From positions 310,001 through 374,000 of the forward strand of contig CDRNVI010000026.1 in assembly GCA_977017575.1 (NCBI GenBank): 64,000 nucleotides of DNA, read 5' to 3'. The DNA is from Paramoeba atlantica (Eukaryota; Protista; Discosea). How positions within the stretch are numbered: the first letter of the stretch is position 1; each line of letters starts with the position of its first letter. The position numbers were made by a program, and so were the translations under genes. This document shows positions 5,113 through 60,337 of the stretch, piece by piece. The notes under the pieces were generated by a model that was not told the origin of the DNA, searched no databases, and saw nothing but the letters and a program-made list of their open reading frames with translations.

Positions 5113-7101
5113 GTCACACGCAGTATCAAACTTTTCATAGCAGTGTGACTATTTAAAAGTTAAGGGGGGTGCCTTATTGGTGTCTAGGAGTTTATAATTT
5201 TCCGATACCAGGAAGAGAAGATACATCAAAATTCACAATGGTAATCGACGATAGAGAGGTAGTTTCAAGAGAAAGATTGCGTTTGAACTTAATTTGCGTA
5301 CACCTGAACACACGTGAAGCCCCGGAAAAAGTTTGGCTAGCATCATACACTGTACATAAGCAATATTAAAGGAAGTACTGGATAACCATATAAAACGAAA
5401 GACAGAGCGTATATTATTTACTACAGCTATTCTAGGAAGGTGTTTGCTTCACATGCCATGCGGATGTCTTGCAGGATACAGCAAATGCGCAAGCTCCATT
5501 TACGCCAAGACACCCATTCGCGAGTTCCGCGTGAAATTTCATGCGCGTTTCTCAGTTTGTTTCGTTTGAGCCGAGGAGAGCCTCTCGACGACGCTGCGTA
5601 GCCGACAGGCTTCTTGCAGCCTCTCAATGACGCATCCCGCAGTGGAAGTCCAGTGCCCCCTTTACCCCCGAGGCGCTGCAGGGTCTTCTTTGATGACCAC
5701 GCGGCGTGCTCATAGGCCGAATCCCTGTGTACGACCGGCGTTGAGTGCGCTGTAATGGCCGATGATAACGGTCGTCGTACGACAGGAAAGTGCTCTGCTG
5801 TCTCGCCCGGTATGAAAATGAAACGAAAAGTTCGTGAACCTGGTGTCGTGAACTGTAGCAATCAGATCCCGCGATTTTTTCACATATTATGAGCCGCTTT
5901 TCGCACTTCCCGAATCTTAGCTTCACGAATGAGGTTTCACAGCAAAATACCACAGGTCGTCCCATATAGGATTTCTAAGACTTGCTGCGCTGCGAGCTGG
6001 CAGTGAGAGGGCTATAACGGCTCTAAGACTCAGACAGAGAAAACTGATCGGCAATTTTGTCCCCCTGTACACTGGCATACCTATTTGTCCTCACATTCAG
6101 TGCATTCTTGTGCTCGAGTTCCGTAATGTGATTTCCTTCCGCAATAGACTCGTTGTGCAACAAGTTTGTGGCATTTCCACCATTTTGGGATTCCGGTGTT
6201 CTCTGCTAATATGATCATAGAGAAACTTAGATCTGAGGCATACACAAAGTCATCACAGACTTCGGACCTTAGGCCAGTATCTGGTTTCGGCATCAAAATT
6301 AATACGCAGAATGGAAGCCAAAATCTCAAATCGAAGCAAAAAAGTGTGGGTAAAAAAAACGCTAGTGGAAGTTTTTTTTGCACCGCTTTGAATCTACATG
6401 CTAAGCAGATGCCTCGGCGTACTATATCTTCATCACGGACGTAATAACCTCTGTTATCCGACAGTTCGGCAATTTCTATTCTCATTGCATCACCATCATA
6501 TTCTGAATACGACCTTGGGAACTTTCCACTCAAGCATGGTACGCTTCTGGTTCGCGTTATTAATTTGCCTCTTACGTATTACTCATGCCCCTGCTGGGTA
6601 AATGGGTAATTGCCCACATGGTGGTAAACGCGGGTCATTGACCCATTTACCGTCACCCCCCTCACTTGTCCTCCTAGGTGACATATCCTCTGTTTACAAT
6701 CAATGAGAGGATATGTTACCTAGTACCAAGATGCGAAAGCGGGGACAAGTCAGGGGCAATGACGATACAAAGATCACTATTTAAGATTGATTAGTTTCAT
6801 TCATTTCATTACCATTTCATTTAGCATACCTGTGACCTCGTACCACACCGGTGGGGACCTCGTACCATACCCGGTATGGTATCGTGACTCGGGGTCGATA
6901 GCATACCCCCCTGGTTTTTCAGACAGAGAAGGTGTGATGTCCCACGTAGATCATAACTCTATAGAGCAGTATTCGTTTGTTTTCTTTATTATTTAGCTCG
7001 TTTTTTTACTTCTATGATTTTTACTTGTGATATTATTAACCCCTACTGGTAATCCCTTTTTCTGGTAATCACTTTTTTAACATTTTCTACAAACAACTTA
7101 A

Positions 7102-8435
7102 CCCGGGGGACGGAATAATATTAAGATGCGGTTTATTATTAAATTGCGATTTGCTGTTAAGTTAGACAAGTTATTGCGGTGGTTGTATAACTACCGCTCT
7201 ACCCTCGAATATTGAAAAAAAGTGAACAAAAACAGTGAAAATATAAAGAGGAACACAGTAATATAATAGAAGAAAAAAATATAGAAGGGGGCTCCAGTGG
7301 TCCAAAATTGAAAAAACTGGGGGGTCCAGGAGGGGGCATACGTCGCAAATTATTTTCTAGATTTTTTTGCTTTTCAAAATCGAGCGCAGGGAAGCGGTAG
7401 AGTAGGCCGCGGCGATAATTTTCCACCCCCTCCCCTGGGGGTACCCCCCCCTGGTACGCGCAGGAGGGGTCCGACAAAGTCAAAAATTCCGAAATTTTTG
7501 GGGTGACCAAAACAAATTATTTTGACCCCTAAAAAAGTAAAAGCATTATTTCTCCAAAATCGACTCCTAAAACGTATTTTAAGTGTTTCGCACCTCGGTT
7601 ACCATTCTACGACGTTTTTTTCGACTGATTCGCCTCCTGCCCCTACTGGTAAGGCATCAAAAACAGTCCAAATTCGGGTTGAAATTTCGCAATTTTCGCT
7701 GAAAAATCCAGCTTTTTCACCCAAAAAAATAGATTATTCATCTAATCCCCATCTATCTTTTGCCGATTTTTCTTTTTTAGTTTCTTCGTTAAACGCGGTG
7801 GTTGTTTTCAACTTAGAAGTCACTCATGCTGCGCGCTTCGCGTTGAAAACTACCACCGCGTTTAACGAAGAGCCTAAAAAAGAAAAATCGCGAAATTCTT
7901 AAGCTAGACAGGTTATTATTAAGCTGGACAAGTTATTATTAAGTTTGTGTTTTTCCATGGAGCAATGAGTTGTTCTGGCCCACAATTTGTAGTTTTATTG
8001 AATGTATAGGGCAGATTTTGGCCAAGATACGTTGGAAAAACATTGCCTACGTAGTGCTATGGAGCAAAACGTTTAACCGTTCGTGCGTAAGTAATTTTGC
8101 TAATGTTATGCTAGAAACGGTAAGGCGAAAGAAGCGACATTCCAGCGTGGCTTCTAGTCGGTTTCTAATCGTTCGGATCCCCAGTGATAGCCAGAGGCTC
8201 TCATCGATTGCCAGTTATACTGCAAGCTACTGCTAACAACCTCCAGCGACTGCCTACACACTCTCCAATGATAAACGTCACTTTAAAATGTCATGAAAAA
8301 CTTAATAGTAACCCGCCGACAAGTTAATATTAAGTTTCAAAACGTTGACAAATTATTATTAAATTCGACGGGTTATTATTAAGTTGTCAAGTTATTATTA
8401 AGTTTTAACAACTTAATATTATTCCGTTCCCCGGT
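7102..8435. mobile_element. piggyBac-like MITE
   Basis: TTAA|CCCGGGGGACGGAATAATATTAAG...CTTAATATTATTCCGTTCCCCGGT|TTAC, with repeated subterminal GACAAGTTATTATTAAG motifs. Confidence 0.65.
7172..7897 (+). repeat. Dispersed repeat 'H', copy 1: 5' mini-palindrome and ~137-bp terminal hairpin
   Basis: Colinear with 44015-44447. Starts GCGGTGGTTGTATAACTACCGC; hairpin spans 7759-7895. Confidence 0.8.
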
Positions 8436-8699
8436 TTACCTTACCTGTGAACTGATACCATACCTGTGACCTTGTACCATACCGGAAGTATGCTAAACCG
8501 ACCCCCTTTTAACTCATTCTTTAGTATAGCAGGCCGAGAGTAACTAATAGAAAAAAGATTCACACTCGAAGTCGGTACTAGGTGACTTGTCCTCCTAGGT
8601 GACATATCCGCATTTGGCCGTTTTTTACCACTTTTGCGAGGATATGTGAGGCGGGGGGTGACGGTACCCGCTTTCACTCTGATTTACCAACCAACCATA

Positions 8700-9420
8700 C
8701 GATCCCAACATCGGGAGCAAGGGAGGCCTGGCGTGAGCTATACACACATATGCAAGCACGTAAAGCCAAGAGTCGCACCTGTTGACCAGGGGCAGCGGCC
8801 AAATGTAGTGTACGACAGCCTCGTAAATCGCTGCGAACATTTCACACGCAGGACCACACTTGTTGCTGAACTTAGACGGGTCCCAACTGAAATCAAGGCA
8901 TGCCAAGTATTTTTCCCACTCATCGGATGAAATACGGAAGATCGGCTTTTCCTGACACCAGCGCGTCACACCTCCGAGTTTCGGAGTTTCGACGCCCTCA
9001 TTTTCACGCGCTACTTGCAAGGTCAGTGTATGACCTATGGAGGACAGGAGTATTATCGAAGAGACACGAGAAGATACACCCCTGTCCAGTTTCATTTACC
9101 CCCCCCCCTACAGGTCTTGTATTTTGTTCGATTTTCGAAATATTTGGTATGCCTTGCTGAAGTGCCGCAGTGTCACTCTCTCCAATCGGGGAAATTTGGT
9201 CGTATATGCGTTTGAGAGCTTCGCAATTGTTGCGTGCCACGTGATTCACAGAACCTCCGTCCGCGATCATTAATTTTAGCTTTAAAGGGCGCTGCTCACC
9301 AAGATTCGCCTGAAGAGTAAGTTGTTCGGCAACTGTTTTTGCATCAAAAGCACGATGACTAGGAGAGCAAATTGGAGGTAAGACGTATTCTTCAGGGCCT
9401 ACATACAGTGTAAAAAGATT
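8700..9420 (-). pseudogene. hAT-like transposase remnant
   Basis: HRAFDAKTVAEQL...LMIADGGSVNHVA (second catalytic D region), TPKLGGVTRW and ISSDEWEKYLACL parallel hAT TRWNS/EW motifs; frameshifted. Confidence 0.55.
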
Positions 9421-11029
9421 TATAAGACGGTAATATTATTTACGAATAATTACTCCCTGCAAGATACCCGTTTGCCGCCATTGAAACGTGGCGGCCGAAA
9501 TGATTTGGGCATTGCCACGTTGTATGGCGATGCCAATGGCCATTATAGCATGGCGGAGAAAACCGTGCCTGTCCGACGTGTACCCTCCGCACTTCCGTAG
9601 AAATGCGAGAGTCTCATTTCCGAGAACACCGAATGCAGAAAAGGCTAAGGGAAAAAGTTTCATTCCACGTGTTGCTGCAAGACTGCCGTAGGTCTTGTGC
9701 TTCGTGGCCTCTGCCCGGACAAGGGTATTTCCGGGCGCTTTACTCTCCATCTCTACATAAGAAGGATCTAATGGGTTGGCTATTGTGACATCCACCATAA
9801 CAAGTTGATGTCCCATTTGGAATAATAAATCTGGGCCTTTTCCTTCGTCGTAGCGGGGCTCCATAATGTCGGGGTGAAAACCATACTGTCTCAAAATATT
9901 TGAGAAGCATGATTTTACTAGGGCGTGTCCCGATTTGAAGACTGTACTCTTCCACCAAAATGAGAATCGGAGGAGTAGACCGCGTGGAAGGTATCAGAAT
10001 AAAGCTGTTCCGCGTTTTCGCCAAAGAGTATGGATCCGATGAGGTCACCCGTAAAAGTTTTGTTGTTCTCAAGCGCTCCGCACCCACCTAGTAGCTCTTC
10101 CGCGAAAATCATTATTACAGCGTCTATCTGCCTGTTCGCCTCTAACGTTGATTCCAATTCATGACTCTGTACTATGTGATTCCATCTTACTGCTCCACAG
10201 TATCGGAAGAGAGTCAAAGCTGCCTGCTTGGGTAAATGGTGCAATCTATCGAGGAAACTTCTAAATTTGGGGGCTTGAGTTAGCACCCATTGAGCTTCTT
10301 GATCCGGGTCATTGGATACAAATGCTCTCAATATTTTCTGCCCTTCGGGGACGTGTTTCAGTTCACATTCTTGAAAGGTTTGAAGTTGCTTCTCGTCGTG
10401 CGTGCTCAGTCGACATTTAGATTGGTTAATGGTTAATCCAAGCATTTCTAGGGATGTGCGAAGGCTGTCAAAAGCATTTGGAACGGCGCCGGGAGGGCCT
10501 ACGAGAGTAATGTCGTCTAAATATGCCCACACGTGTACAGAGTTTTTGAATTCCGCGGCCAAGTCGCTGAGAATGCCTTGGATCCCCAGCGCGAAGTAAA
10601 GGGGACCCAAAGGATCTCCCTGACGTACGCCTCGGCTGCTAGAGATGGGTTCGAGTCCACGAAGAAGAAGTCTAGAAGGAAGACTGTATGCGAAGAGAAA
10701 GATCCCAATCAGAGGTTGTAATTTTGGGCATTGACGTATGGCTCTAGCAATAAAAGCCCGTTCAATCGTATTGAAGGCATTTTTAAGGTCAACTGTTAGT
10801 AGAGTATTGTTCACATTGTTTCTGAAAGCACGACGTGAACGAAAAATGATGTGATGCGTTTCATGTGGTGTACCCACACCAAATTGAATATCTTTGAATT
10901 TTTTCTCGGTGAAGCTTACAACTTGAGACCGTGCATGGGAGCTCGCTAGTTTTAAGAATAGCTCTCCCAAAGCAATCGGGCGGCATGCGGGGGTGTCACT
11001 TGGGATGTCATCTTTCCTGAAGAGACATA

Positions 11030-12907
11030 CAGGGGTGCGGGTCTAAAGGGGGGGTCTAAAATTCGTAAAAGTTGTCCAATTTTGGAAAATAATAGCGCAT
11101 TGGATAGCTCTCACAGAGTTGTATGTTTTAGGCGCATTAAAATCCTGCGATTTTAACGTACATTTTTTTTGATACCATATTTCGCTTTTTTCCCTTGCAG
11201 AAATTACATTTTTTACTAGAAAATGCCCCAAAAGCGCGCTCGCTCGAGGACTTCCCGTGGAGTACTGAGCGATAGATCGTATTCTTCCCCCGCCCCCGTC
11301 AAAGAGAGAAATTTTTGATCAGGCTATGAAAAAGCCACGGGGCTTTCTTCAATATCTAAAGCGACATCCAGCGGCCACGATTGCCATGGACAACTGCCCG
11401 GCCCACAACAAGGCGCGTGCCACGTTCCGTGATACAGGAATTTCCGTTCTTCCCTGGCCTGCAAAATCTCCAGACCTGAATCCGATCGAAAATTTGTGGT
11501 CTGTGATGGACACAGACAAAAATCTTCTTCGACCCCGAAATCGACAGCAACTGGAAGCCGCTATTGAGGGGTCTTTCCTTAAATTGAAACAGACCCACTC
11601 TGCAACGGTTCAGAAAACGTTGAAGAGTTTCAGGAAGCGTTGTGAAATTGTTATTAGTCGGAACGGGGGGCACTGTGGTTACTAATTGTCTTTTGCAATC
11701 CAAATTACAGAAATTATTGACACCACTAAAGTATTGCAATATGTGTTTTTGACCCTTACATGAACGGGGGGTACCCCCCAAACCCCGGAAGCTACCTACA
11801 CTGTCCCCCCCCTACTTATGCGCAACCGTTTGACCCGGCCAATTAAGCAATTTTGACGCATCGTTCAGAAGAACAGCGCCGCAAAGCGGCGCAATTTGTT
11901 TTTTTGTAGTACGAATTTTTGTACAGATTTTCGCCGCTCTTGAAATGGAGAGTCCCTTTGGGCGTTCAAAAATGATCTCCAGCGATCTCCTCTGATCCAC
12001 ACTGATCTCCACCGGTCTGTACGGCGAGTCTTTGCATACTATACTGTACTGTACATCAGAGGAACTCTCCTGCCACGTACTGTACGTTTTTGAAATGATC
12101 AGCGCACCAGCGTGCGGAACCGCCTAGATGTGGGGCGGGTAAAGATAACGTGGGTAATTGCACTACAAGTGCATGATAAACTAAACTTTAATTTATAAAT
12201 TTATTTCGGACCCACGCTCTTAAAAGTCCGTTCTTTTCCTACAATTGATCGGGTGCTCGCAAAAAAGGCACTTACCTCGTGATGTGGTCATTTGCGGGCA
12301 TAAGTAACCATACAAGCGAAGTACTGTACCTCCTCCCTAGTTATCTCTCACACGTCACCCCCTGTCCGACTGATCTTCCAATGAATCGGTAAACACTTCG
12401 AACCTCGAAAAAATACCCACAGCGTTCGCAACCGGTCGCGATTGGTTGCCACCGTTCGACAACGAGCTACAGGTACCGTCTGCACCCCTCCACTGATGGT
12501 ACTAACGCCGACCAACTACCATTTTCATTAATTATATTTTATAGATATAAAAATGGGCGAAGTAAAAAGTGGGGGTCACAGTAATTATAACTCATTTTTT
12601 TTATAAAATATAATTTATAGAAATTAGAGGGGGAGTATATAAAAAGCAGCCCCCCGGGGCACCCCGCGTACATAACTCATGATTAAAACACGCGTCACGA
12701 AGAGGCGAGAAAAATTTTTTTCACCCCTTTTTTTGACCCGGCTACTTATGCGCAATTTTAGGCCAAAACCTGGTTGCGCTTAAGTGGGGGGGGGACAGTA
12801 TCCTAAAACATACAACTCTGTGAGAGCTATCCAATGCGCTATTATTTTCCAAAATTGGACAACTTTTACGAATTTTAGACCCCCCCACCTTTAGATTCGC
12901 ACCCCTG
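11030..12907 (+). mobile_element. Tc1-like element with ~100-bp TIRs and a partial DDE domain (11326-11685)
   Basis: TA|CAGGGGTGCG...CGCACCCCTG|TA; MDNCPAH...WPAKSPDLNPIENLW. Removing it with one TA restores the CRE frame LTQCDLCLFRKDD. Confidence 0.9.
11801..12798. mobile_element. MITE nested in the Tc1 element; contains a further CTGT...ACAG unit at 12324-12581
   Basis: CTGTCCCCCCCCTACTTATGCGCAACC...GGTTGCGCTTAAGTGGGGGGGGGACAG|TA. Confidence 0.75.
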
Positions 12908-13374
12908 TAAGTCGCACTGCGTTAGGGCATTTCGTAGGCCTGGTGGAGCTGTGCTTTACAACGCTTGCTTTACAATCCAGACGACTTATGCTAGAACATG
13001 TTCGTCCATAAGGAGGGGGAACAAGAGTTCGCGGGTCCAACCTGAGGGGCCAGGAGCTGAGCCTCGTGGCATCCGCCGATTCGCTTCAATGATATCTGGA
13101 CCAGCTACGTTGACCGCAGTGTCCTTAGAGGGGCGCGGCATAGGGAAGCGATAACTGCGTGGGTGTAAAACGGCCGCGGCCCGCTTTATCTCTGCTGGGG
13201 TGAGAGGATCTCTCTCCGTACTGTCTAGGGCGCGCGTGGCCTTCGATATCGCTAAGGAGTCTAAGCGATCGTTTCTCTGCCGCTGAGGATTTGTCCTTAG
13301 CTGGAGTAATGGGCGTTTTCGGAGGATTGCATTCCTGATCAGGTTTTAAAAAACGTGAACGAAGTTCGTGCGCC

Positions 13375-56157: not shown

Positions 56158-56333
56158 TATCGGATTGCATTAAGTCAGAAACCGAAAATAGCAGTATCTA
56201 ATTTGAATGGTATAAAGGAAATTAATACGTGCTATTTCAATGGGCACACCGCGTGTCACACACGTCTCGTATTTGTATGCCTCTGCTTTTGCTCATATTA
56301 GTAAAACGTTTTTTTACGTTACTGAATCTTGTA

Positions 56334-56894
56334 CAGGGGGGATCAGCTAATGCTGGGGGTATCTAAAATTTGTAAAACTTTTAAAATTTTGGAAAATATA
56401 GCACATTCGAGAGCTCTCACACAGCCCTCCTGTGGAGGATATATCGTTTTCCGTGCTTTTACACATGACGCATTTTAGAGTGAAAATACGTTTTTTCGAC
56501 TTACATTTTTGCATTTTTTTTTATTGTTTTTGAGATTTCTCCTGTTTTCATCATTCATGCCTCAAAGACGAGTATCTGCACGTTCACTTCGGGAGAAATT
56601 GCCGGAGAGCCGTTTCTCACCCCAGGGGACATAAATATTGTTATAGAGAGAAACGGGGGTCACTGTGAGTATTAGGTTTGGATTTACGTTTCGGGAAAAA
56701 ACGCCAGAATTTCTTAAAAAACTTACAATCGACGTTTTTGACCCTCCCACTATTTTATAAAACTGTTGATTTTATGCACAATGACATATCCTCCACAGGA
56801 GGGCTGTGTGAGAGCTCTCGAAGGCGCTATTATTTTCCAAAATTGGCCAAGTTTTACAAATTTTAGACCCCCCCGCATTAGCTGATCCCCTCTA
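56334..56894. mobile_element. Tc1-type MITE with ~120-bp TIRs related to the 11030 element
   Basis: TA|CAGGGGGGATCAGCTAATGC...GCATTAGCTGATCCCC; shares TCTAAAATT.GTAAAA...TTTTGGAAAAT...GAGCTCTCAC with the 11030 TIR. Confidence 0.8.
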
Positions 56895-57096
56895 TAATTA
56901 ATATGTATATTAAATCGTAAAGAATTAATTATTAATTCGCAGAGAATTAATTATTAATTCGTAAAGAATTAATTAGGCGGAATTCTATTAATATAGGGTA
57001 GCGAGGGAATAGCATCTCCCTCAATAATAAGAACTAATGCATGTTGATAACTTTTAAAACAGGTCACAATGTGAAACGTTAAACAACATACATGTA

Positions 57097-60021
57097 CTGT
57101 GACCCCCCCCTTTAATATGCACACGTTTTTGGGGTTTGTGCATATTAAAGGGGGGGGTAAGAGAGGGGAGAACCCGCCGCCCCCCCCCAAAAAAAAAAAA
57201 TTGCGCCGCTTCGCGGCGCCTTTCTCTCCTGTACGTGTTTTGATCTTACGTCGCATAGCGTATGGTACTTTTCAGCAGAGATGATGGCCGGGGCGGGGGG
57301 ACTGTTCGTGTGTGCCAGCATGGAAAATGTGAAGAACGTGTACATATTAAATATTAAAATATTTAATAAAAAATATTATTTGTAAGTTTAATTGTTGTAG
57401 CTCATATTATTAATACATGAAGTAAATGTCGTGTATGGTGAAACACGAAGAAGAGGGCGCGTACTAATGCAACAAGAAGCTAGTGCGGGGAAAAGTGTAG
57501 AAGCATCGAACAAAACATGGAAAAACCCCCACAAAAAATATCAGTGTAAAATTTGAGTATAATAGCGCGCACGTAAACTTATTTTGGATAGGAATTTGTA
57601 TCTCCGTCATTAATTTTCGGACAGCTCCCATCCATCCGCGGTCGCATCTTCAAGCGGCACATCGTTTATCAAATTGATTGTATACTCACAATCGGAATCT
57701 GAGTCACGGAGCGCTCCGACGGTTTCTTCGTCAGTACTTTGTTTTTCAGGAAGTGAGGGAATTCCTGGTCCGCACGGCCACCATGACTTAGAAAGATTCT
57801 TTCGGGTCAAAACATTATTCACCCTACTGAATGTGGCAGGATAGAACAGGAATGAACATAAATTGTTCACTACATGTATTCCACATTCATTTAGCGTAGA
57901 CTCCTGCTGCATGACTGGAGCATGTCGAAGACGAACATCCTCTATTGAGTGACCAAGAAGAGGACAGAATAATTTTAGAAAGCATTGAAGAAAATCTTGA
58001 CCAGCAATCGGAGAATAACCCTCGTAACTATCAAATATTGTCAACAGATGCTTTCGGAGTTCCGCGAAAAAAAAATGGTTGTTAAAAAAGAGTACCGCAA
58101 TAATTCGTGAGTCGGGGAAAATATGACTGAACATTTTGCGCTGAAAACCTAAAAGTAATCGAGTCTTTCCTGTGTTCAAAAAAACTATTCTTTTGTCTGC
58201 GAAAGGGGCTAGACGGTATGCCTGCAATACATTTTCGCATAATGTATCAACAGCATGCGTCGTAAGAAATCGCTTTCGACCGCGGAATCGTTTCCACTCT
58301 TTGTCATAGTGGGACGTGTTGCCCGCACTATCTTCTACCACAGTGGATTCTTGTGTGGGTTTTTCTCCTTTTGAAATTGAGGAGGGTGAGACGGCATGTT
58401 CAGGACATATTCCAAGAGTAGTTTTTGAGCCAACTGTAAGGCTTGACTCAATCCAAGGGTATTCAGTCGCAGGTCGCAAAATGTAAGTTTGTGCAACTTT
58501 TAATAAAGTGCTCTGGTTTTTTGCCCATACATGTGCATGTGCATCCTTAATCCATTGCAAAACAAGCGCACGAGTAACCTTCTGGACGCTATTTCGAAGT
58601 CGCCACGCGCTAAGCTCATTATATTGACGCTTGAATAAGCGATTAAAAACGCGATCATGGAATTGTATGGCTTTCGTACACCCTCCGGGTATCGTCTGTG
58701 GATCACAATTCGTTGGTACATTATTCGTTCTATGAGCGGTATAATCGTCCGTGATAATAACCGTCGAGGGGTTGTCAAGAGTATAGTGCAAATATTTCTT
58801 TAACATTCGCTCATAGACATCGTCAGTAACCCACCCAGAACGACTTACATCGATGTAAATCCCGCTCAGAGAATAAGCTAGACGTGTCATTTCAGTGTAA
58901 ATGGTAGAGCTTTCTCGATTCTTTGCATTGTGCTCAAAGATCACCGTTGGGTAAAGTGGAAATACCTTATCCAAAGCAAAATCATACACACCTGCAAGAA
59001 AAGCTGTAACTGTTTCTTTCGGATTGGTATCCACGACTTTTGGCTGTGGGCAACCAATCGGAGCAAGAGTGTATCCTTGAACTTCTCCATTTACAAACAT
59101 CGCAGTTTCGTCACCGAAGAAAGCGAAGCGATACTTACGCACGGTGTTTTGAGTATAAAATTTCTCTGCCCACTGAGAGATTCGAAATTCTACGTCACTG
59201 GGCGCCAGGCACTGCGTTCGACCCCATCTCCGCCACACCCATCCATAGTGCTTTTTGAAACGCTGATAAGTGTCTTCTAAAGCTGTTATAGAAGTTAATC
59301 TCGTTTTCTGTCGGATCAAATCGATCACCATCGACTTGGTCAGTGGGCACCACAATGCGGAGGCCTGCTCACAAGCACGATGAACAGACAGCATTGCCTC
59401 AGCCTTATCATAGACTTCGGCATTCGCATCACTATAATCCCCCCCTCTTTCATTGAATCCCCGGTTCCGGTGTTGGTTTCCCATGTTGCGGTTAATTAAC
59501 TTTTGGTAGTGGTCAATCCCCGTTTTACGAATTTCATAAACCGCTCTCCGTGATATACCATACTTTTGTTCGATTTGCTTTACAGAACTTTGAGATCTAC
59601 AAATTTCTCGCTTCTCGAATATAGTAAGTTCAGTACGCTGCCGTTTTTCCTGAACTGTTACCGTCGGGGTGTTGTTAATAATAAGGGATATGCGCTCCCC
59701 TACTTGCGGTTGGGGAGGGAGCTTCCGAAGCCAAGTGGTCAGAGGTCCACGCACAGAGTGAACTGTGGTCGGAACTCCGTCAGTATCTGACATAAGGGTG
59801 AAAAGTACGAGAGAAAGAGAGGAACAAGTATACAAATATATATTATCTCCACATACATAGATGCACATCAGAGGCTTAAAAGCACAAAGCCCTTTGAAGA
59901 AATTGGTTAAAAATAGGCAAAACATCTGCTCTCAAAAAAACGCTCCGAAAATTCAACATGGAATTTGTGCATATTAAGGGGGGGGAGGGAAGGGGGTGCA
60001 TATTAAAGGGGGGGGTCACAG
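57097..60021 (-). mobile_element. Full-length pogo/Tc2-like transposon, 2925 bp, perfect 26-bp TIRs, TA duplication
   Basis: TA|CTGTGACCCCCCCCTTTAATATGCAC...GTGCATATTAAAGGGGGGGGTCACAG|TA; extra motif copies at 57138-57157 and 59967-59985. Confidence 0.92.
57610..59925 (-). CDS. pogo-like transposase (CENP-B-type HTH, DDE_1, DD30D) fused to an Ulp1/C48 cysteine protease; likely start Met at 59793
   Basis: ELTIFEKREI HTH; GDET, SGWVTDD, TDDYTAH, IPGGCTKAIQFHD; protease motifs NNHFFF, IFDSY, QQESTLNECGIHV. Confidence 0.88.
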   Translation of the reverse strand: MFCLFLTNFFKGLCAFKPLMCIYVCGDNIYLYTCSSLSLVLFTLMSDTDGVPTTVHSVRGPLTTWLRKLPPQPQVGERISLIINNTPTVTVQEKRQRTELTIFEKREICRSQSSVKQIEQKYGISRRAVYEIRKTGIDHYQKLINRNMGNQHRNRGFNERGGDYSDANAEVYDKAEAMLSVHRACEQASALWCPLTKSMVIDLIRQKTRLTSITALEDTYQRFKKHYGWVWRRWGRTQCLAPSDVEFRISQWAEKFYTQNTVRKYRFAFFGDETAMFVNGEVQGYTLAPIGCPQPKVVDTNPKETVTAFLAGVYDFALDKVFPLYPTVIFEHNAKNRESSTIYTEMTRLAYSLSGIYIDVSRSGWVTDDVYERMLKKYLHYTLDNPSTVIITDDYTAHRTNNVPTNCDPQTIPGGCTKAIQFHDRVFNRLFKRQYNELSAWRLRNSVQKVTRALVLQWIKDAHAHVWAKNQSTLLKVAQTYILRPATEYPWIESSLTVGSKTTLGICPEHAVSPSSISKGEKPTQESTVVEDSAGNTSHYDKEWKRFRGRKRFLTTHAVDTLCENVLQAYRLAPFADKRIVFLNTGKTRLLLGFQRKMFSHIFPDSRIIAVLFFNNHFFFAELRKHLLTIFDSYEGYSPIAGQDFLQCFLKLFCPLLGHSIEDVRLRHAPVMQQESTLNECGIHVVNNLCSFLFYPATFSRVNNVLTRKNLSKSWWPCGPGIPSLPEKQSTDEETVGALRDSDSDCEYTINLINDVPLEDATADGWELSEN

Positions 60022-60337
60022 TATGTTGTTGTATGTATTAGCAACAGAACACGATTCTTTTTCAAAATCTGCCATACAGCAATTATCCATTTTTCGGACG
60101 ATCATTTTACCTAAATAAAACATAGACTATTTAGAACATTATATGCGTGCACATGACATTAGAAGACGTGCATTTGCGGCACTGCATCTCGATCAAGTTA
60201 TTTTAGCAGTTCGCTTTCTTTTGGTAAGCGAAATTGGTAACCTATTGGATATTGTAGTAGAAGTATTAACATCTAGGCAAAATTAAGATTCGTACTGATA
60301 TTTTGAGGGTTTTCTTAAAGGGATAAAAACACGTTTA

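Follow-up and report, generated by a model that had tools for sequence, protein, structure and literature searches.

A pogo-type transposon from Paramoeba atlantica DNA with a predicted Ulp1/SENP-like protease domain fused to its transposase

Can a transposase of the pogo type carry a protease domain within the same polypeptide, and what would such a domain do for the transposon that encodes it? These questions are raised by a 64-kb stretch of Paramoeba atlantica DNA (contig CDRNVI010000026.1, positions 310,001 to 374,000; hereafter the window), in which positions 57097-60021 form a structurally complete transposon of 2,925 bp. Its single open reading frame (ORF) is predicted to encode a pogo-type transposase followed in frame by an Ulp1/SENP-like cysteine protease. 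We put the probability that the element and its two domains are correctly identified at about 0.85, based on sequence comparison and structural modeling. The fusion had been proposed in an earlier annotation of the same DNA, here called the original prediction.

The element and its fused protein

The inverted-repeat arms of the transposon (57095-57122 and 59996-60023) are 28 nt long and 100% complementary, and on each side they comprise the TA target-site duplication and a 26-nt terminal inverted repeat (TIR). A 25-nt terminal pattern has two sites in the window, both at the ends of the element; shuffled sequences predict 0.00. Near each end the motif GTGCATATTAAAGGGGGGGG occurs once more, in inverted orientation on the ORF-distal side (57137-57163) and in direct orientation on the ORF-proximal side (59966-59985). 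A near-identical TIR surrounds the 63%-identical copy in L001, which also repeats the inverted inner-motif layout at 8576-8628. The minus-strand frame stays open from 57610 to 59925, giving 771 aa without a stop, and the ATG at 59793 is the likely start of a 727-aa protein because it is from that residue onward that the copies in L004 and L007 align. The perfect 26-bp TIRs, TA duplication, and uninterrupted ORF of the original prediction were thus all found as claimed. Its further description of the element as the only fully intact transposable element (TE) here fits the window, where tblastn turned up no second copy. The remaining coordinates are collected in Table 1.

The transposase part matches Pfam DDE_1 over aa 280-422 (E 2.3e-7, 31 bits against a cut-off of 22), and the language-model (Atlas) neighbors of aa 1-450 all belong to DDE_1, Tigger, or pogo clusters. 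The three catalytic Asp residues, in the motifs FGDE, [TF]D, and HDR, are invariant relative to P0009, the other intact full-length protein of the family, at 39% identity in the transposase alignment. The spacing between D349 and D380 is 30 residues in the window copy and 31 in P0009. A deletion runs across the second Asp in P0002, the other triad Asp residues of which match the window copy and P0009. The proposed DD30D triad is therefore in place, with the expected spacing and a DDE_1 score above the Pfam cut-off. A sequence search of the PDB with the transposase profile gave no match. The helix-turn-helix (HTH) that had been called CENP-B-like is a plausible candidate, with CENP-B_N scores under the cut-off in both copies that show them: the window copy matches HTH_28 at E 0.026 and CENP-B_N at E 0.28, both sub-threshold, and aa 50-90 of the paralog P0022 match CENP-B_N at E 0.0029 (17.7 bits against 21.2). 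The Pfam search gave no match of HTH_Tnp_Tc5 to the window protein. Sequence comparison supports placing the element in the pogo type (IS630/Tc1/mariner group, Pfam DDE_1).

Evidence for a protease in the C-terminal part came from profiles built on the family. An exhaustive HMMER search of 1.84 billion representatives, with a profile made from the window and L001 protease domains, returned 19 proteins. Three of these (P0017, P0018, and P0020) exceed the Pfam Peptidase_C48 cut-off of 20.7 with scores of 29-40 bits, and weak Pfam C48 matches were also seen in 3 of 12 close family members. P0011, on a 1.1-kb contig, is a distant relative of the protease. Two further hits, P0008 (2,299 aa, 18 stretches) and P0016, are repeat proteins and were left out of the alignments as spurious. 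When a 15-member family profile was compared with the PDB, yeast Ulp1 was matched at E 5e-6, along with SENP1, SENP5, and Ulp2. With the three Pfam-positive members removed from the profile, Ulp1 (E 4e-4) and Ulp2 (E 2e-3) were still the top two PDB matches. In both profile alignments the HF, DS, QQ, and N-[DE]-C motifs of the family align with SHW, DS, PQQ, and DCG of Ulp1. Language-model (Atlas) features of aa 490-690 reach 0.96 to Peptidase_C48 clusters, with C48 carried by 72 of 100 matches.

In terms of structure, an AlphaFold2 model computed from the 15-sequence alignment has a mean predicted local distance difference test score (pLDDT) of 89.5 and a predicted template modeling score (pTM) of 0.87. 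An attempt from a 2-sequence alignment was set aside at a pLDDT of 38, so alignment depth mattered. The best 50 Foldseek matches of the model in the PDB are all CE-clan proteases, led by Ulp2, SENP5, Ulp1, SENP2, and SENP7. E values run from 1e-7 to 1e-5, with probability 1.00 to Ulp2, SENP5, Ulp1, and SENP2, and Swiss-Prot models agree. VIA-align gave Z scores of 14-15.7 to SENP8, SENP2, SENP1, and Ulp1, with 2.8-3.3 A over about 165 of 196 residues, and ranked the eukaryotic Ulp/SENP proteases clearly above bacterial CE effectors (Z ~10) and adenain (Z ~9). The fold that had been placed at aa ~550-700 was found in this way through both profile and structure comparison. The predicted catalytic residues H573, D588, Q630, and C637 align with those of Ulp1 in the order H-D-Q-C. 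Of the codons named in the original prediction, D228, D349, D380, H573, D588, and C637 translate as stated, and the Gln-Gln pair lies at 57904-57909, one base away from the 57905-57910 given.

Two results weigh against a SUMO-protease reading. Pfam Peptidase_C48 (PF02902) has no match in the window protein up to E 10, and when the last 263 aa were compared directly with Pfam and with PDB sequences, nothing meaningful emerged either (PriA at E 0.6). The C48 assignment rests on profile and structure evidence for that reason. Additionally, where Ulp1 has a Trp right after its catalytic His (HW), the family has Phe or Tyr (HF/HY), so the substrate could differ from SUMO. The missing PF02902 match is a sensitivity limit of one model and does not contradict the fold and residue results. 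Taken together, the profiles and the model identify the C-terminal part as a predicted Ulp1/SENP (C48) domain that has the complete His-Asp-Gln-Cys set and shares the reading frame of the transposase.

Table 1. Features of the transposon and of a possibly related element, with positions in the window
Feature	Position	Strand	Evidence
Non-coding element of ~1 kb, ends related (CTGTCCCCCCCC...ATGCGCA), sub-terminal GC hairpin of the same type	11801-12798		36-nt match to element positions 96-131
TA target-site duplication, left copy	57095-57096		Inverted repeat takes in TA at both sides
Left TIR, 3' end relative to the ORF, CTGTGACCCCCCCCTTTAATATGCAC	57097-57122	+	Perfect complement of 59996-60021
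Inner TIR-motif copy, inverted relative to the left TIR, 13-nt spacer	57137-57163	-	27 nt, 93% complementary
Sub-terminal A-run and GC hairpin, GCGCCGC-TTCG-GCGGCGC	57190-57222		Sequence
Single ORF, 727 aa plus stop, predicted transposase-Ulp1 fusion	57610-59793	-	P0009 (784 aa) collinear across both domains
Acidic C-terminal tail, aa 691-727	57613-57723	-	GW-E/D-xS end partly kept in L001, L006, L007, L008
Predicted Ulp1/SENP-like (C48, CE clan) cysteine protease, aa 495-690, His573/Asp588/Gln630/Cys637	57724-58311	-	Profiles, AlphaFold2, Foldseek
Ser/Thr/Glu-rich linker, aa 443-494, not conserved	58312-58467	-	Unaligned in L001
DDE_1 (pogo-type) catalytic core, aa 216-442, D228/D349/D380 (DD30D)	58468-59148	-	Pfam DDE_1
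Probable N-terminal helix-turn-helix, aa 50-90	59524-59646	-	Sub-threshold Pfam matches
Inner TIR-motif copy, direct relative to the right TIR	59966-59985	-	Repeat search
Right TIR, 5' end relative to the ORF	59996-60021	-	Perfect inverted repeat
TA target-site duplication, right copy	60022-60023		Sequence and inverted repeat

Conservation of the fusion and its counterparts in known transposons

Word-indexed searches of 5.8 billion proteins with the full protein, the transposase profile, and P0009 returned as full-length relatives only copies of ENA assembly ERZ24900291 and P0009, which lies on one Logan contig. Scans of JGI metagenome contigs with transposase patterns and protease patterns gave no relatives. 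L002, from ERZ24900291, is the same locus as the window at 99.3% identity. More distant copies were aligned by tblastn. L001 is 63% identical in the transposase and 44% identical in the protease; it has one stop, and 30 aa spanning the second Asp are deleted. L007 is 75% identical in the transposase and 51-53% further on, and is frameshifted. In L006, an internal deletion has joined the N-terminus to the protease. L003/P0009, from a separate data set, retains an intact 784-aa ORF at 34% identity. The same domain order, transposase and then protease, is found in L001, L006, L007, and L003/P0009, and the TIR motif surrounds the copies in L001, L004, L005, L006, and L007, the arms of L001 being perfect over 28 nt with TA. 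By the terms of the original prediction, other copies lacking the protease would have spoken against it. Instead, the diverged copies in L001, L006, and L007 carry it, as does P0009.

Between subfamilies, silent sites are saturated, with a proportion of silent differences (pS) of 0.76-0.89. The corresponding proportion of replacement differences (pN) is 0.26-0.36 in the protease, where pS is 0.76-0.86, and 0.09-0.18 in the DDE core; in the linker compared with L003, pN (0.62) is about equal to pS (0.61). The low pN of the protease against saturated pS therefore indicates that the protease was under purifying selection while the family diversified. The fusion and the protease residues are conserved across copies that are 26-60% identical in the protease domain. 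This pattern indicates that the transposase-protease fusion is an ancestral, constrained trait of the family.

Conservation of the catalytic residues also bears on whether the domain cleaves anything. The C-terminal domain could be a non-cleaving module that binds SUMO or ubiquitin or tethers the protein to chromatin, and the Phe/Tyr in place of Trp after the catalytic His would fit such a use. So would the triad Asp that is Asn in three fragments (P0004, P0007, and P0019). Asn can, however, stand in for Asp in papain-like triads. Moreover, almost every member whose sequence spans these positions retains His, Gln-Gln, and Cys, down to 21-26% identity, the exceptions being Glu-Gln in P0009, Ser for Cys in P0019, and Arg for His in P0021. 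The window copy and P0009, which are the two intact full-length proteins, both have the complete catalytic set. We consider a binding-only domain improbable and favor a catalytic protease.

The pogo superfamily comprises Tigger, pogoR, Lemi, Passer, Mover, and Fot/Fot-like elements (Gao et al. 2020, PMC7386202), with DD29-56D triads, TIRs of up to 40 bp, lengths of 1.2-5.2 kb, and proteins of 300-977 aa (PMC7386202). The window element shares the DDE_1 core and DDD triad, its 30-residue spacing falls inside DD29-56D, and it also has the TA duplication, short TIRs, and single ORF, with 2.9 kb and 727 aa inside the known ranges. Unlike pogo elements, it has a very divergent transposase with HTH matches under the Pfam thresholds, and it adds a C-terminal C48 protease domain. 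The pogo survey describes only DNA-binding and DDE domains for the transposons, and the words protease, peptidase, and Ulp are absent from it (PMC7386202).

An in-frame Ulp1 has a precedent outside pogo. Ginger1 transposases carry one at the C-terminus (Bao, Kapitonov and Jurka 2010, PMC2836005), and the window element resembles them in having an Ulp1 (pfam02902-type) domain in frame at the C-terminus of the DDE transposase of a TIR element. Ginger1 differs in being Gypsy-integrase-like (YPYY, H2C2 zinc finger, GPY/F), in contrast to the DDE_1 core and TA duplication of the window element. The only transposase domain that Pfam found in the window protein is DDE_1, which does not point to Ginger1. 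The C48 peptidase has been recruited recurrently by DNA transposons, including Mutator (KI-MULEs), CACTA, and Crypton. In plant Mutator-like element (MULE) clusters (PMC12973397) and some CryptonS (PMC3212892), the C48 domain is reported to sit on a non-transposase or additional protein, unlike the C48 domain here, which lies within the transposase polypeptide in two intact proteins that are 34% identical. Compared with the cellular Ulp1, Ulp2, SENP1/2/3/5/7, and SENP8/DEN1, the model shares the fold over the whole catalytic domain, with His, Asp, Cys, and the oxyanion Gln aligned. Identity to the cellular Ulp/SENP proteases is only 10-17%, HF stands in place of their HW, and, with a transposase fused to the protease domain, the N-terminal targeting region of the cellular enzymes is absent.

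A literature search, with Repbase outside its scope, found no fusion of a pogo or Tc1/mariner transposase with Ulp1, C48, or a SUMO protease. The novelty claimed for the in-frame fusion therefore stands for pogo and is narrower than first implied, because Ginger1 already has one. If the assignment is right, the IS630/Tc1/mariner group would gain its first Ulp1 fusion. Should the host be a kinetoplastid, the finding would also add an intact class II element to a group for which the literature reports Merlin alone, with none in trypanosomatids (PMC8101967, PMC12278014). For a free-living kinetoplastid host, it would be further evidence of class II elements before the trypanosomatid loss.

A possible role for the protease

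Mutator, CACTA, Crypton, and Ginger1 have each picked up C48/Ulp1 independently, and the benefit to the transposon is still unexplained. The Ginger paper offered the proposal that TE-borne Ulp1 and OTU proteases may actively aid transposition, for example by activating DNA-repair factors during or after it (PMC2836005). For the window element, the N-terminal HTH region would recognize the copies of GTGCATATTAAAGGGGGGGG that are repeated at each terminus, and excision and reinsertion at TA would fall to the DDD core. The tethered protease could then act in trans, removing ubiquitin-like proteins (Ubl), most likely SUMO, from host chromatin or repair proteins at the site of transposition. Such removal may help transposition or the repair that follows. 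This role for the protease is tentative, and from the sequence and the model we rate it somewhat below an even chance. A stronger version is a lineage-restricted pogo clade in which the Ubl deconjugase is an obligatory, coevolving part of the transposase, needed for transposition because it strips SUMO from chromatin or repair factors at the donor or target site. That version is doubtful.

Alternatively, the protease could process its own protein. The original prediction had raised this option, in which the domain would cut in cis or in trans, as adenain and the poxvirus I7 protease do, freeing the transposase and leaving host Ubl conjugates alone. The CE clan does include viral polyprotein-processing proteases (adenain at Z ~9, and a weak Peptidase_C57 match in P0017), and a long flexible linker joins the two domains. 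However, Gly-Gly is absent from the linker of both the window protein and P0009, and the only GG in the window protein is in IPGGCT, within the DDE core. The linker is also not conserved, and by structure the domain is nearer to eukaryotic SENP/Ulp deconjugases than to viral processing proteases. We judge self-processing to be quite improbable because the linker has no Gly-Gly and is unconstrained, and deconjugation in trans is the role that we prefer.

Whichever role applies, the element would make a simple system in which to ask what the protease does, being a compact 2.9-kb, single-ORF, TA-targeting transposon of the tractable Tc1/mariner/pogo type. Protease and transposase form one covalent unit, the protease has long been constrained, and one point mutation (Cys637) in one protein could serve as a probe. 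Additionally, the family could offer a native transposon tool.

State of the window copy and its surroundings

Is the window copy still a working transposon? Several results count against it. The copy lacks one AAG (Leu) codon after 58611, between codons 393 and 394 and 13 residues past the third Asp; L002, L001, and P0009 keep it, and it is present in 59-74% of contig depth in three public runs (X1-X3). No empty-site joint was seen in the contigs of the public runs, and the sole RNA-labeled run gave nothing for the element. The transposase ORF lies on the minus strand, antisense to a one-directional host gene array. These points also favor reading the window copy as an intact-looking relic that is neither currently nor recently active, from an old family, with its insertion fixed and silent. 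The insertion is shared with L002, with flanks 99.3% identical, and with contigs of the three runs. Most other fetched copies are frameshifted, truncated, or deleted. Set against a relic are the perfect 26-nt TIRs, the intact TA duplication, and the 727 open codons, so any decay would have to be very recent. Comparison with L002 over 403 codons, at dS 0.007-0.03 and dN ~0.002, also speaks against it. On balance, the odds that the copy is a relic are about even. The recent activity claimed in the original prediction finds no support, given the insertion shared with L002, the lack of any observed empty site, and the 1-codon deletion.

The open ORF, the presence of the insertion in two assemblies, and the low dN relative to L002 could also be explained by a domesticated, now immobile host gene derived from the transposase-protease fusion. 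The perfect TIRs, TA duplication, and internal binding-motif repeats nevertheless remain in place. The family is multicopy, with many decayed, TIR-bounded copies at unrelated loci, and the ORF runs antisense to the host array. Domestication is highly improbable on these grounds, and a transposon copy, relic or not, is the better description.

The depth of TIR words in the public runs is 10-40x that of the flanks, which fits many TIR-bearing relatives, though contig depth is a poor measure. Joints that skip ~2.82-2.84 kb between the TIR regions were considered as deletion derivatives and rejected, as each end carries the TIR motif more than once and mapping is ambiguous. Within L002, at 7243-13296 (ctg3625l), the element ends abruptly partway through the transposase gene at the equivalent of window position 58556, with at least 6 kb of unrelated DNA beyond, including a 31-bp tandem array at ~11084-11458. 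This breakpoint stems from structural variation, a large insertion, or an assembly error. The X1-X3 contigs bridge 58556 as the window does. In L005, L007, and L008 (ERZ24900291), RVT_1 (reverse-transcriptase) ORFs lie beside or inside decayed pogo-Ulp1 copies, which suggests TE-rich islands with nested insertions.

Host ORFs across the window (1-64000) are nearly all on the plus strand, resembling a polycistronic array. Long ORFs follow this orientation except for those that overlap plus-strand ORFs and a free-standing 350-aa ORF at 9918-10970. No Rfam family reached its gathering score anywhere in the window.

Three TA-flanked elements in the window start with CYGT(N0-2)C6-9, at 6650-8664, 11801-12798, and 57097-60021, the last being the pogo element. 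The original prediction had named the pogo element a candidate driver of the miniature inverted-repeat transposable elements (MITEs) with CYGT ends. The pogo element and these MITEs share 12-14 terminal bases and the sub-terminal hairpin, and the inner TIR sequence differs. Mobilization of the MITEs by the window transposase is only a possibility because of that difference. Tblastn found no coding similarity between 11801-12798 and the pogo element, of which the 1-kb element is a possible non-autonomous relative, judging from its ends and hairpin.

The GC hairpin, with a 7-bp GCGCCGC stem and a 4-nt loop beside an A/T run, recurs in the window at 57190-57222 and 11868-11905, in L001 at 5855-5885, and in L003 at ~2625-2655. 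Even L003, at 34% identity, has it, as does the 1-kb non-coding element. The hairpin could provide an accessory site for binding or a signal resembling a terminator.

Other repeats lie around these elements. A nested element at 11024-12913 consists of an outer Tc1-like element with TA-CAGGGGTGCG ends and 85-nt perfect arms (11048-11132 and 12802-12886). It retains a C-terminal transposase remnant at ~11300-11680 and is interrupted by the 1-kb CTGT-C8 element at 11801-12798. The arms of the 2-kb, TA-flanked element at 6650-8664, which has CCGTCACCCCCC ends, share only their first 12 nt, and small inverted-repeat elements are nested inside it at 7099-8438 and 7759-7895. Directly to the left of the pogo copy, an inverted-repeat element at 56332-56896 has arms that resemble the Tc1-like arms at 11048-11132 and not the pogo TIR. 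Its arm at 56753-56903 reaches about 100x the flank word depth in the three public runs, and we therefore regard it as a very high-copy MITE. Between this element and the transposon, positions 56906-56975 contain a 22-bp unit (TATTAAATCGTAAAGAATTAATTA) in three tandem copies, some 120 bp away from the left TIR.

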